A DNA stretch of 64,000 nt from Dimorphilus gyrociliatus (Eukaryota > Animalia > Annelida): contig CAJFCJ010000009.1 of the NCBI GenBank assembly GCA_904063045.1, positions 2,604,968 to 2,668,967 on the forward strand. The letters are read 5' to 3'. The notes under the pieces are model-generated. The model searched no databases. It was not told the DNA's origin and saw only the letters and a list, made by a program, of their open reading frames with translations. Both the position numbers and the translations under genes were made by a program. This document shows, one piece after another, positions 4,335 to 8,397 of the stretch (its first letter is position 1; every line of letters starts with the position of its first letter).

Positions 4335-7300
4335 TCAAAGGGATTGAAATTGACTGAGTGTTGATTTCACCCTGGAGAAAACAAATTATATAAATTAATT
4401 AATTAGCTATAAATTTAAATATAAAATTAACGAACTTTTCATATAATTGTTGATGATCAGTAGCCAACATTTTTTTCAATAATTCCTCAAATCCCATATT
4501 GCGTAACTTTTCTTGTCTACCTTTAGCTCCATCATCCGTTTGGACTAAGTTCCCGAGACAGATAACGGTAGCAGTTTGTAAATTTATATCTATATCATTA
4601 CTCATATACGTTTTCAAAGAATTTAAAATATCATCGTTAGTCATTATGAAATTTTTGCCTGTTTCACTGTCAGCTGCATTTCCAAGTATACAGACAGCCT
4701 AACAAAAAAACAACAAACATAAAATTAAGGAAACGAGTACTTATAATTATTTATGATTTCTCACTTGTTCTTTCACTTCTGATCCACGATCACTCTTGAT
4801 AATCATTAACACAGCTTCACTTATATCTTTACCATGCTGGTGCATAATTTCATCGATATGCTGCTTAAATAGTGATATAGATAGATATATAGAAATTTAT
4901 AAGGTTGCAGAAATAATTGACTTACAGGTTGATTAGAAAGCAAATTTCGAATTAAACCCAAAGTTTTCATAATAACTTCCGAAGAGTCCAACAGTAGTTT
5001 ATTCAAATGTTCCGTACCCAATGTGCTAATGATTAATTTTTTGGTAGATTGCTCAGCTTTAAAAGCTATATTCATCAATCCCCAAACTCCATTAAGACGA
5101 AGTGAACATTCATCCCTCTTACTCAAATCTACAAGTACATCAACAACACCTTGATTTATCAAAGGTTCCTTGCTTGGAGAGAACTCCAAAAGCAAATTAC
5201 AAAGAGTTGATGATGCAACAGTCATTAGTTCATCCGATGCATTTTTAATTAGCTGTTAAATTTAGTAATTTACATCAGGAGAACCTTTAAATCATTTCAT
5301 CTAACCTTCATTAAGGGTTGGCAAACGGAATAGTCTTGAAAGGTTGTCCTCTGCAACTGCACAGATCTCGATAAGCTAAGCATACATCGAACTGCAGCTA
5401 ATTGAACTTTTGCAACGGGATCACTCAAGCCTTGCACAATGTGTCTCATGACAGTCTCCGTTTCGATAATCTGAAAATAATTGGGTTTGATCTTATATTA
5501 TAAAGTATAGAGTAGTCATACCTTTTTTCTTATTTCTTCATCATTAGCACCCAATGAAGCGAAAGCTTTAAACGCAGCTTGTCTTAGCTCATTTCCAACT
5601 ATGATACCATCCTGTTTAGTTGAACAAATTGAGTTAAAATGTACTGCTAAATATACAGCAGATATATATTTATACTTTTTCTTTCGGCATTAAGTCTTTG
5701 TCTATCCAGCTGCCAGGATATTTAAAATACTGTGATAAGGATTGTAAGACGTTTTCGCAAATTGCTGCAGTCTTCTGCAATTCGGTGTCTACTTCAATTA
5801 AGTGAGCCAGGGTTTCAGCTCCTTCAACCCTTTGTTCCCAAGTTTTATCAGATTGGCACATGCGAACCAAAGTAGTTAAAGCCTTTTTTACAATCAGTGG
5901 ATTATTTGCTTCAAGACTCTTGCATCTGTACATGTTAGTAAGACTGAAAAGAAAAAAGAAGATTAATTAATCTCAAAACACCGCTTGACTAATTTCTTCC
6001 GCACAATTTAGCTTTAACAGTTTGTAATTCAACTTCTTCGCCTCTTGACATAGATCTACCAATTATTGATGTTATAGATTCGTTTCCATACATTGCTAAC
6101 AAAAATAGAGTAATTAGAATTTTACCTATTTATTCTATATAATAACTTACTTTCATTGACTTTCATTGCAGCGCGTTCATTATTAGAAACAAGAGAAACC
6201 AAAAACTTTAACGATGACAATTGAACCTAAAAAAACAAGAAATAGAACAGTCAAAAAACAACAACATTCTCTATGCTGAAAATAAAGAGTTTATATCTAT
6301 CAGCGAATGCTTACCCGACGAACGGGAGATGTGATAAGAGGACAGACATTTTCAACGACGCCCATCTTACATAGGAAATCTTGATATTCTTCATTCTGCA
6401 ATAAATTCAAAACGAATAAGTCTTTGAAACAAACAACTTCAAGAGTAAGTTGATTATTTTAATCATAAATATACAGTGAGACGTGGTGGCCGAGTGGTTA
6501 AGGCGATGGACTGCTATCTGTTCAAACTACGTAGAGATCCATTGTGCTCTGCACGCGTGGGTTCGAATCCCACCCGCGTCGATAATTTTTTTTTCTTATA
6601 AATTTGGATTTTTTCACCTATACAACGAATTATGAATTTTCGATTTTTTTTTGGTTCACTAGATGTCGAGACGTGGTGGCCGAGTGGTTAAGGCGATGGA
6701 CTGCTAATAGATTTCGGCAGCTAATCCATTGTGCTCTGCACGCGTGGGTTCGAATCCCACCCGCGTCGCTATTTTTTCCTAATTTTTACAGTTTTTCAAA
6801 TCTCCACTTTGGGAAGACTGAATCCAAGTTTTGATGATGCCGCTTCAAATATCAAGGAGACGTGGTGGCCGAGTGGTTAAGGCGATGGACTGCTATCTAT
6901 TCAAGATATGTAGAGATCCATTGTGCTCTGCACGCGTGGGTTCGAATCCCACCCGCGTCGATAATTTTTTTGAATTTATTATTCCGGTTTTTGTTCGAAA
7001 AGCAGTAAATTTAGAATAATTTTCCAGATAACAACCTGACTGATCGACGAGACGTGGTGGCCGAGTGGTTAAGGCGATGGACTGCTATTCGTTCATACTA
7101 AATTGATATCCATTGTGCTCTGCACGCGTGGGTTCGAATCCCACCCGCGTCGATAATTTTTTCTTTTTTATTTTTCTTACTCTTGATTGCTAAATGCCCA
7201 TCAACTTTTACAGATTTTCTATAAAGTCAACGAGACGTGGTGGCCGAGTGGTTAAGGCGATGGACTGCTAATAGATTTCGGCAGCTAATCCATTGTGCTC

Positions 7301-8397
7301 TGCACGCGTGGGTTCGAATCCCACCCGCGTCGACAAATTTTTTGCCTTTTCTTTAATAAAATTGCTAAAAGACTAATTTACAAAAACATTAAATATAGTC
7401 CTGCACTGGCGCTAAACTTCAATTAAATAACTATCCACTTATCTCATACCTTATTTGCTCTACCTATCTTAAAGTGGTACCTCTTGTATATATACTTTAT
7501 ATATTCACTGTACAAAGAGATTAGAAGTAATACTTACACTGCAACAACTTGACATTATATCCGTAACACATTCTTTTATTGTGTTTGAGTTATAAAGTAG
7601 ATCTATTAATTTTTGGACGAATGCTTCCTATTTAGAGAAGTAATAATTAACCGTTAAAGTAGAGAAAGAATGAAGAATATGTAAATTGAAATCACCTCCA
7701 AAAAGCATTTCTTTGGGCACGAAGGATGCTTCAGTAAATATTTCAAGCATCTTAGACAATTTTCAATCAAAAGAACATTATCCGATGATAAAGCTATATT
7801 ACGATAACAAAATTAATTAGATAATAAAAAATTTATTTGCAGATAATATTTCTGCTAACAAACCTTTAACCACAATTTCAAATGAACCATTTTCAATTAA
7901 TATTTGAGCATTCTCTTGACCTCCTAGAGCCAAACTTGTCATAATAACAGCCGAGATGATTTTAATATCTTCATCAGTATCACTACTTGCTAAAAACTCG
8001 TGTAATCTAAGTGAATAGGGATAAGACATAGTAAGCTTTTTTTAATAAACATCCTGTAAATCTAATTACTGTAACAGCAAAATTATATTTTTACCTAAAT
8101 AAGAGACGTGTTTTTAAGTAGTTCTTTTTATTTCTCTTATTCCCTATTATATCATCTCTAAGACGTCTGTAAGACAAACATAAAAGAAATCTTTTTAAAT
8201 GGATTATTTCGTTAATGAGAAAATGTATTACCTTAGACTCCCCAACCATTGGGAATCGTCGTTGCTCATAATACCGTCTAAAGGGTGAATAACAACAGTA
8301 AGACTCTCCTCAACTTCCTGAAAAGTTTTAAAAAGTAAGATAAAACTTAATAGAAAACAAACAAATAATGGTGATAAATTACCATTTCCGTTTCCAT
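4335..8397 (-). CDS. ARMC8: Armadillo repeat-containing protein 8 (GID/CTLH complex subunit), multi-exon
   Basis: Exon peptides match ARMC8: [56 protein letters not shown]. Start is METEM (ATG at 8397). The last exon [12 protein letters not shown] ends at 4335. The junctions I checked are GT-AG. Confidence 0.95.
6480..6581 (+). tRNA. tRNA-Ser-GCT: tRNA-Ser(GCT) copy 1 with 20-nt intron 6517-6536
   Basis: Acceptor stem GACGTGG/CCGCGTC, A-box TGGCCGAGTGG, anticodon arm ATGGA-CT-GCT-A|A-TCCAT, long variable arm, B-box GGTTCGAATCC and an oligo-T terminator. Mature length is 82 nt. Confidence 0.95.
6670..6768 (+). tRNA. tRNA-Ser-GCT: tRNA-Ser(GCT) copy 2 with 17-nt intron 6707-6723
   Basis: Exons identical to copy 1. 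Intron ATAGATTTCGGCAGCTA. T-run terminator follows. Confidence 0.95.
6859..6960 (+). tRNA. tRNA-Ser-GCT: tRNA-Ser(GCT) copy 3 with 20-nt intron 6896-6915
   Basis: Exons identical to copy 1. Intron TCTATTCAAGATATGTAGAG. T-run terminator follows. Confidence 0.95.
7051..7152 (+). tRNA. tRNA-Ser-GCT: tRNA-Ser(GCT) copy 4 with 20-nt intron 7088-7107
   Basis: Exons identical to copy 1. Intron TTCGTTCATACTAAATTGAT. T-run terminator follows. Confidence 0.95.
7234..7332 (+). tRNA. tRNA-Ser-GCT: tRNA-Ser(GCT) copy 5 with 17-nt intron 7271-7287
   Basis: Identical to copy 2 including the intron. T-run terminator follows. Confidence 0.95.

Follow-up and report, generated by a model that had tools for sequence, protein, structure and literature searches.

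Can an animal read the serine codons AGC and AGU only through tRNAs that must first be spliced? The question is raised by a 64,000-nucleotide (nt) stretch of the genome of the annelid Dimorphilus gyrociliatus (GenBank assembly GCA_904063045.1, contig CAJFCJ010000009.1; contig 9, 2604968-2668967; hereafter, the window), in which positions 6480-7332 hold a tandem array of five tRNA-Ser(GCT) genes on the + strand, each interrupted in the anticodon loop. Introns are found in about 7% of animal tRNA genes and about 50% of fungal ones in a GtRNAdb survey, with four spliced tRNAs in human (PMC12168002), and Ser-GCT lies outside the usual spliced animal families, as the first-pass annotation of the window had said. 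Here, we report that the array belongs to a wider pattern: tRNA introns abound across the genome, in about a quarter to a third of the tRNA genes and in at least 15 anticodon families. We consider it highly probable that the five genes are working RNA polymerase III (Pol III) genes for cytoplasmic tRNA-Ser(GCU), that they are canonically spliced, and that decoding of AGC and AGU (AGY) depends on this splicing. In position, size, and geometry, these are ordinary introns with a textbook mechanism; the novelty lies in their host and their breadth.

Five tRNA-Ser(GCT) genes with 17- or 20-nt inserts at the canonical 37/38 site had been proposed at 6480-7332, and both coordinates and inserts were borne out by Rfam, ARAGORN, and alignment. 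The Rfam tRNA model (RF00005) gave five matches in the window, at 53.3 to 53.6 bits each against a gathering score of 29, and the alignments span the entire model (positions 1-71), with a 19-22-nt insertion in the anticodon loop. ARAGORN in intron mode (-i) called five tRNA-Ser(gct) genes in the window, with introns of 20, 17, 20, 20, and 17 nt at position 38; default mode, which ignores introns, called zero tRNA genes in the whole window because intron mode was off, so this result does not speak against the genes. In the alignment, the exons (37 + 45 nt) are invariant across all five copies and the insert lies in each exactly at the junction of nucleotides 37 and 38, a single base beyond the anticodon on its 3′ side; when parsed at this canonical position, the 37-nt 5′ exon ends with the loop C-U-G-C-U-A. 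With the insert removed, a single 82-nt sequence is left, and folding confirmed the predicted standard Ser-GCT cloverleaf (class II, with a 7-nt anticodon loop). The hallmarks of a Pol III tRNA-Ser gene are present (A box, B box, long variable arm, and terminal G, the G73 discriminator), and T-runs of 6-9 T begin 3-5 nt past the 3′ end of each gene.

The individual copies differ in how their introns can fold. One feature is conserved among eukaryotic pre-tRNAs, the anticodon-intron (A-I) pair of nucleotide 32 with intron position -3 (32:-3), which places the 3′ splice site in a 3-nt bulge and is critical for excision (PMC10485636; also PMC4090602). Copy 1 (6480-6581; 5′ exon 6480-6516, 3′ exon 6537-6581; RF00005, 53.3 bits; ARAGORN -i, i(38,20)) has a 20-nt intron (6517-6536) with a G at -3 that can pair with C32 and is followed by a terminator of nine T (6586-6594). 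In copy 2 (6670-6768; exons 6670-6706 and 6724-6768; 53.6 bits; i(38,17); six T at 6772-6777), the 17-nt intron (6707-6723) has a C at -3 and a G at -4, so that its anticodon-intron helix is 5 bp long and its bulge 4 nt. The 20-nt intron of copy 3 (intron, 6896-6915; gene, 6859-6960; exons 6859-6895 and 6916-6960; 53.3 bits; i(38,20); seven T at 6965-6971) gives a textbook anticodon-intron helix in its minimum-energy fold, in which the anticodon stem is followed by C32-U33-G34-C35 paired to the intron and by a 3-nt bulge holding the 3′ splice site. Copy 4 (7051-7152; exons 7051-7087 and 7108-7152; 53.4 bits; i(38,20); six T at 7157-7162) retains G at -3 in its 20-nt intron (7088-7107), and the remainder of its anticodon-intron helix is weak. 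Copy 5 (7234-7332; exons 7234-7270 and 7288-7332; 53.6 bits; i(38,17); six T at 7338-7343) carries a 17-nt intron (7271-7287) of the same sequence as that of copy 2. All of these features lie on the + strand, and G stands at intron position -3 opposite C32 in copies 1, 3, and 4 and in an unlinked sixth gene at C2:2445488.

This sixth gene emerged when the whole assembly (77,897,245 bases, 349 contigs, about 30% G+C) was searched for Ser-GCT genes. A pattern of the exon sequence flanking the anticodon loop, with 0-30 free bases between, matched six loci in the genome (the five in the window and C2:2445488), all with a 17-20-nt insert and none with a gap of 0. The Ser-type D-arm (two or fewer mismatches) matched 27 loci, all of which were fetched and classified: six were GCT (6/6 with an intron), seven were TGA (4/7 with an intron), and the others included AGA and CGA genes, which have no intron, and Leu-TAA. 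A whole-genome search for U33-GCU-A37 with a B box at tRNA-like distance found no intron-less GCT gene, only Ile-AAT genes and noise. A family on small contigs that had matched as a “GCT anticodon” pattern proved to be tRNA-Ile(AAT) and was set aside; about 13 such near-identical, intron-less tRNA-Ile(AAT) genes lie on small contigs (C42, C44, C78, C152, C226, and others), with one decayed copy on C35. Whether all Ser-GCT loci of this genome are intronic, a check that the first-pass annotation had proposed, is thus answered by pattern searches and ARAGORN alike, at six of six. In the long open frames of the window, 28% of Ser codons are AGC or AGT, so tRNA-Ser(GCU) is needed; because every Ser-GCT gene found has an intron, AGC/AGU decoding should depend on tRNA splicing unless a gene is missing from the assembly. 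Transcribed as we infer them to be, these genes would supply the only decoder of AGC/AGU.

The pattern of conservation argues that the copies are kept. Exons are identical in all six Ser-GCT genes, the unlinked one included, while the spacers between the tandem copies, which stand 183-192 bp apart, are near-random in similarity (z of 0.7-4.0 against shuffles), with the residual similarity due mostly to T-runs. Invariant exons among scrambled spacers indicate copies that duplicated long ago and have been kept by purifying selection, with gene conversion across the gene body now and then, and not pseudogenes. The six genes carry five distinct introns: those of copies 1 and 3 are alike at 16 of 20 positions, those of copies 2 and 5 are identical, and the others agree at about 50-65%. 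The one 17-nt intron of copies 2 and 5 sits between unrelated flanking spacers, which points to gene conversion over the gene body.

Do the introns look as if they were cut? For the A-I pair, 70 intron-bearing tRNA genes from other regions of the genome were parsed. The 32:-3 pair was possible in 50 of about 52 distinct introns by automatic parsing and, after hand correction of mis-parsed Thr-TGT, Pro-CGG, and Arg-CCG introns, in all except one; control offsets allowed pairing in 11-23 of 52. The lone exception is the intron common to window copies 2 and 5. The pair also covaries between families, C32 with G and U32 with A or G. This conservation and covariation are strong indirect evidence, at the level of sequence, that the introns are under selection for cutting by TSEN, the endonuclease of tRNA splicing. 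The genome encodes the machinery: the TSEN catalytic domain (PF01974) matched two loci (C6:4061107-4061411 and C5:2961744-2961827), as would be expected for TSEN2 and TSEN34, and RtcB (PF01139) gave one match of 480 bits (C16:277013-278308, - strand). The RtcB match reads across two TAG stops, most likely short spliceosomal introns and not damage. The pre-tRNA would fold with an anticodon-intron helix, an endonuclease of the TSEN2/TSEN34 type would cut both ends of the intron, and RtcB would join the exons into one 82-nt tRNA. All Ser-GCT genes being intron-bearing, AGY decoding should hang on the TSEN/RtcB pathway, and the dependence proposed earlier is supported (6/6 genes with introns, no intron-less gene found, TSEN and RtcB both encoded). 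That the array introns are a source of tRNA intronic circular RNAs (tricRNAs) or aid an intron-dependent modification is speculation; in flies, tRNA introns of <21 nt escaped circular-intron detection for technical reasons (PMC4536317).

Ser-GCT is not the special case that the first-pass annotation had taken it to be, since canonical introns are present genome-wide, in at least 75 tRNA genes of at least 15 anticodon families. The census used patterns for long A-box-to-B-box spacing, from which loci were fetched, run through ARAGORN -i, and parsed at the canonical position. The long-spacing pattern with a G57-type B box gave 93 matches against 32 in the control, of which about 58 were recognisable tRNAs, and that with an A57-type B box gave ten Lys-TTT genes; normal-spacing patterns gave 135 matches against 19 and 73 against 34 in the control. 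These spacing patterns replaced a plain B-box pattern, which was noisy (688 matches against 525 in the control). Because it misplaced several introns, ARAGORN -i gave some genes wrong labels, for instance Leu(taa) for Pro, Asp(gtc) for Tyr, and Val or Asn for Leu; these were corrected at the canonical position. Rfam, run on a subset of the sampled loci, confirmed 65 tRNAs, 54 of them 87-112 nt long, while a whole-genome Rfam tRNA search, in which the best 63 of 4539 candidates were scored, all high, was of no use as a census. Intron-bearing genes numbered about 10 for Pro-TGG, five for Pro-AGG, one for Pro-CGG, seven for Leu-AAG, three for Leu-TAG, nine for Arg-TCT, one each for Arg-CCT and Arg-CCG, 10 for Lys-TTT, five for Thr-TGT, and seven for Tyr-GTA, along with 5 of 12 sampled Glu-TTC genes, 1 of 6 sampled Thr-AGT genes, 4 of 7 Ser-TGA genes, and the 6 of 6 Ser-GCT genes. 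Patterns for Ile-TAT and Leu-CAA genes in this genome returned nothing convincing. Set against a published total of about 320 tRNA genes for D. gyrociliatus (32% GC; PMC12257675), at least 23% are intron-bearing; among pattern-detected genes, the share is about 32% (70 of about 221).

Many of these genes are clustered. At C2:2892000-2894900, seven Ser genes stand with one Gln gene; four Ser-TGA genes there have introns of 16-23 nt, all with G at -3, beside one intron-less Ser-TGA gene and intron-less Ser-AGA and Ser-CGA genes. Several Ser-TGA and Ser-GCT introns start with the same TCT..TTC motif, and the two families are identical over positions 8 to 31; an intron transfer by gene conversion between them is conceivable. 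Fourteen tRNA-Pro genes (TGG, AGG, and CGG) lie within about 34 kb of C4:1-40000, 14/14 with a 16-31-nt intron in which U32 pairs with A or G at -3; further single intron-bearing Pro genes are found at C28:152311 and C3:2826235, and one intron-less Pro-CGG at C12:1576922. Five tRNA-Thr(TGT) genes occupy C5:3491000-3494000, and four of the five have a 36-nt intron, the longest seen, whose interior holds an inverted repeat; of the introns seen, these would be the likeliest to be detected as circles. Nine of the ten tRNA-Lys(TTT) genes are in tandem at C14:1856000-1859400; all ten have introns of 21-22 nt, and no intron-less Lys-TTT gene was seen with the patterns used. The Leu-AAG/Leu-TAG (10) and Arg-TCT (9) genes are all intron-bearing (C5:549-602 kb, C5:2497-2503 kb, C12, and C17), and the single intron-bearing Arg-CCT and Arg-CCG genes are at C10:1510505 and C29:305483. 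Beside the window array itself, an apparent protein-coding exon on the - strand (about 6300-6370) begins some 110 bp upstream of the array's first gene and heads away from it, which places the array in a short intergenic stretch adjoining a divergent gene.

How far does this resemble what is known elsewhere? The closest counterparts of the array are tS(GCU)F and tS(GCU)O of Saccharomyces cerevisiae (PMC6582322, PMC4090602), and the first-pass annotation was right that budding yeast has Ser-GCU introns (PMC6582322). The isoacceptor, the canonical 37/38 site, the short intron, and the intron-bearing state of the whole family are shared; in yeast, this is one of ten intron families in a fungal host, the intron sequences are unrelated to those of the array, the ligase is Trl1, and splicing is cytoplasmic. 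Removal of the yeast tRNA-Ser(GCU) introns caused no growth defect (PMC6582322). The usual animal families (Tyr-GTA, Ile-TAT, and Leu-CAA, with Arg-TCT in vertebrates) have the same kind of intron as the array and the same expected TSEN, RtcB, and A-I rule (PMC10485636, PMC12168002). Tyr-GTA and Arg-TCT are intron-bearing in D. gyrociliatus too, whereas the usual set excludes Ser-GCT and comprises three or four families against at least 15 anticodon families here. In the large share of intron-bearing genes and the many isoacceptors split at 37/38, D. gyrociliatus is like the intron-rich fungi (about 50% of genes; 92% in Cryptococcus neoformans; PMC12168002, PMC4090602), but it is an animal, at a minimum of 23% (75 of about 320) where animals average about 7% (PMC12168002) and the sea urchin stands at 3.7% (PMC4090602). 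Precedents for shifting sets of intron-bearing isodecoders exist in the lineage-specific gain and loss of tRNA introns in Saccharomycetaceae and their rise in Thermoproteales, where isodecoder genes were homogenised with their introns by gene conversion, in yeasts and archaea and not in an animal (PMC4090602, PMC2888827).

Several points weigh against the reading of the array as working, canonically spliced genes on which AGY decoding depends. A search of sequencing runs found no RNA run containing the array stretch (one probable DNA run matched 0.56 of its words, and other runs matched exon-sized shares only), and the transcription, splicing, exact cut sites, and any intron role of the array genes are deduced from their letters. 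The search for intron-less genes depends on the usual Ser D-arm or on a B box that fits GGTTCRANNCC, and a very divergent or unassembled gene would escape it. The genome-wide count was made with patterns and ARAGORN in place of tRNAscan-SE, and several introns that ARAGORN misplaced had to be re-parsed by hand. In copies 2 and 5, moreover, the 32:-3 pair is absent (C at -3, G at -4, and a 4-nt bulge), and these two copies may be poorer splicing substrates. Dead or unspliced array copies, with a functional intron-less Ser-GCT gene elsewhere supplying the tRNA, would fit the lack of an RNA run containing the stretch and an assembly in 349 contigs that may be missing loci; this is very improbable, as three independent searches yield no intron-less GCT gene, the exons of six genes are identical while spacers are scrambled, unlike those of pseudogenes, the terminators and the internal promoter boxes show no damage, and the splicing pair has been kept. 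An array that works only in part is a less remote prospect, though still an unlikely one: copies 2 and 5 would be cut poorly or at a shifted 3′ site, with a 32:-4 pair replacing 32:-3 and leaving the 4-nt bulge. Of about 52 distinct introns, theirs alone lacks a possible 32:-3 pair, the fold gives a 5-bp helix followed by four unpaired bases, and the A-I pair is critical for excision (PMC10485636). Yet the exons and terminators of both copies are intact, the presence of one intron in two copies with unrelated spacers suggests that it was copied and kept and is not decaying, and a ruler mechanism lets the eukaryotic enzyme measure from the tRNA body as well, so that a 4-nt bulge may be tolerated (PMC10485636, PMC4090602).

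A different matter is where the introns came from. We propose, tentatively and with confidence just short of even, that among known animals the tRNA set of D. gyrociliatus or its clade is by far the richest in introns and that the introns spread after its split from the other animals studied; all Pro-AGG/TGG, Lys-UUU, Thr-UGU, Arg-UCU, Leu-AAG/UAG, Tyr, and Ser-GCU genes would be included. It is also possible, if somewhat doubtful, that the Ser-GCT intron is widespread in annelids or spiralians or was retained from an intron-rich opisthokont ancestor, so that its apparent oddness reflects the bias of databases toward vertebrates, insects, and nematodes. No publication on the nuclear tRNA introns of annelids, molluscs, or Dimorphilus came up in a literature search, which leaves the clade unsampled, and tRNA goes unmentioned in the main text of the D. 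gyrociliatus genome paper (PMC7854359). That paper describes the species as conservative, with many ancestral spliceosomal introns retained (PMC7854359), and the earlier view of this genome as intron-depleted is only half borne out: it does have fewer introns than other annelids, but its retention of ancestral introns is high. Of the ten intron families of yeast, five (Leu-UAG, Lys-UUU, Pro-UGG, Ser-GCU, and Tyr-GUA; PMC6582322) bear introns in D. gyrociliatus too, although roughly 3.5 would be expected, so the overlap is about that of chance. Further against a widespread or ancestral intron, a scan of public metagenome contigs for a conserved animal-type Ser-GCT gene with an 8-38-nt insert gave zero matches, whereas the same gene with 0-30 nt allowed gave at least 125 matches on at least 118 contigs (at least 27 distinct sequences), all those listed with a gap of 0; this fits animal Ser-GCT genes being normally intron-less, in a sample whose taxa are not known.

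The persistence of tRNA introns has long been a puzzle, one that work on animals has addressed in three or four families. An animal that relies on splicing for every Ser-GCU gene, and for many further families, is a natural test case: for whether introns delay or direct modifications at positions 32-37, for how TSEN handles diverse substrates, the intron with a 4-nt bulge in copies 2 and 5 among them, and for how introns spread or persist during genome compaction. It is also a warning for annotation, as tRNA finders miss whole isoacceptor families in this genome when intron mode is off. If D. gyrociliatus does have the most intron-rich tRNA set of any animal, then the reading of many codon boxes would rely on TSEN and RtcB, and the textbook rule that animals splice three or four tRNA families would be an artefact of model-organism sampling.

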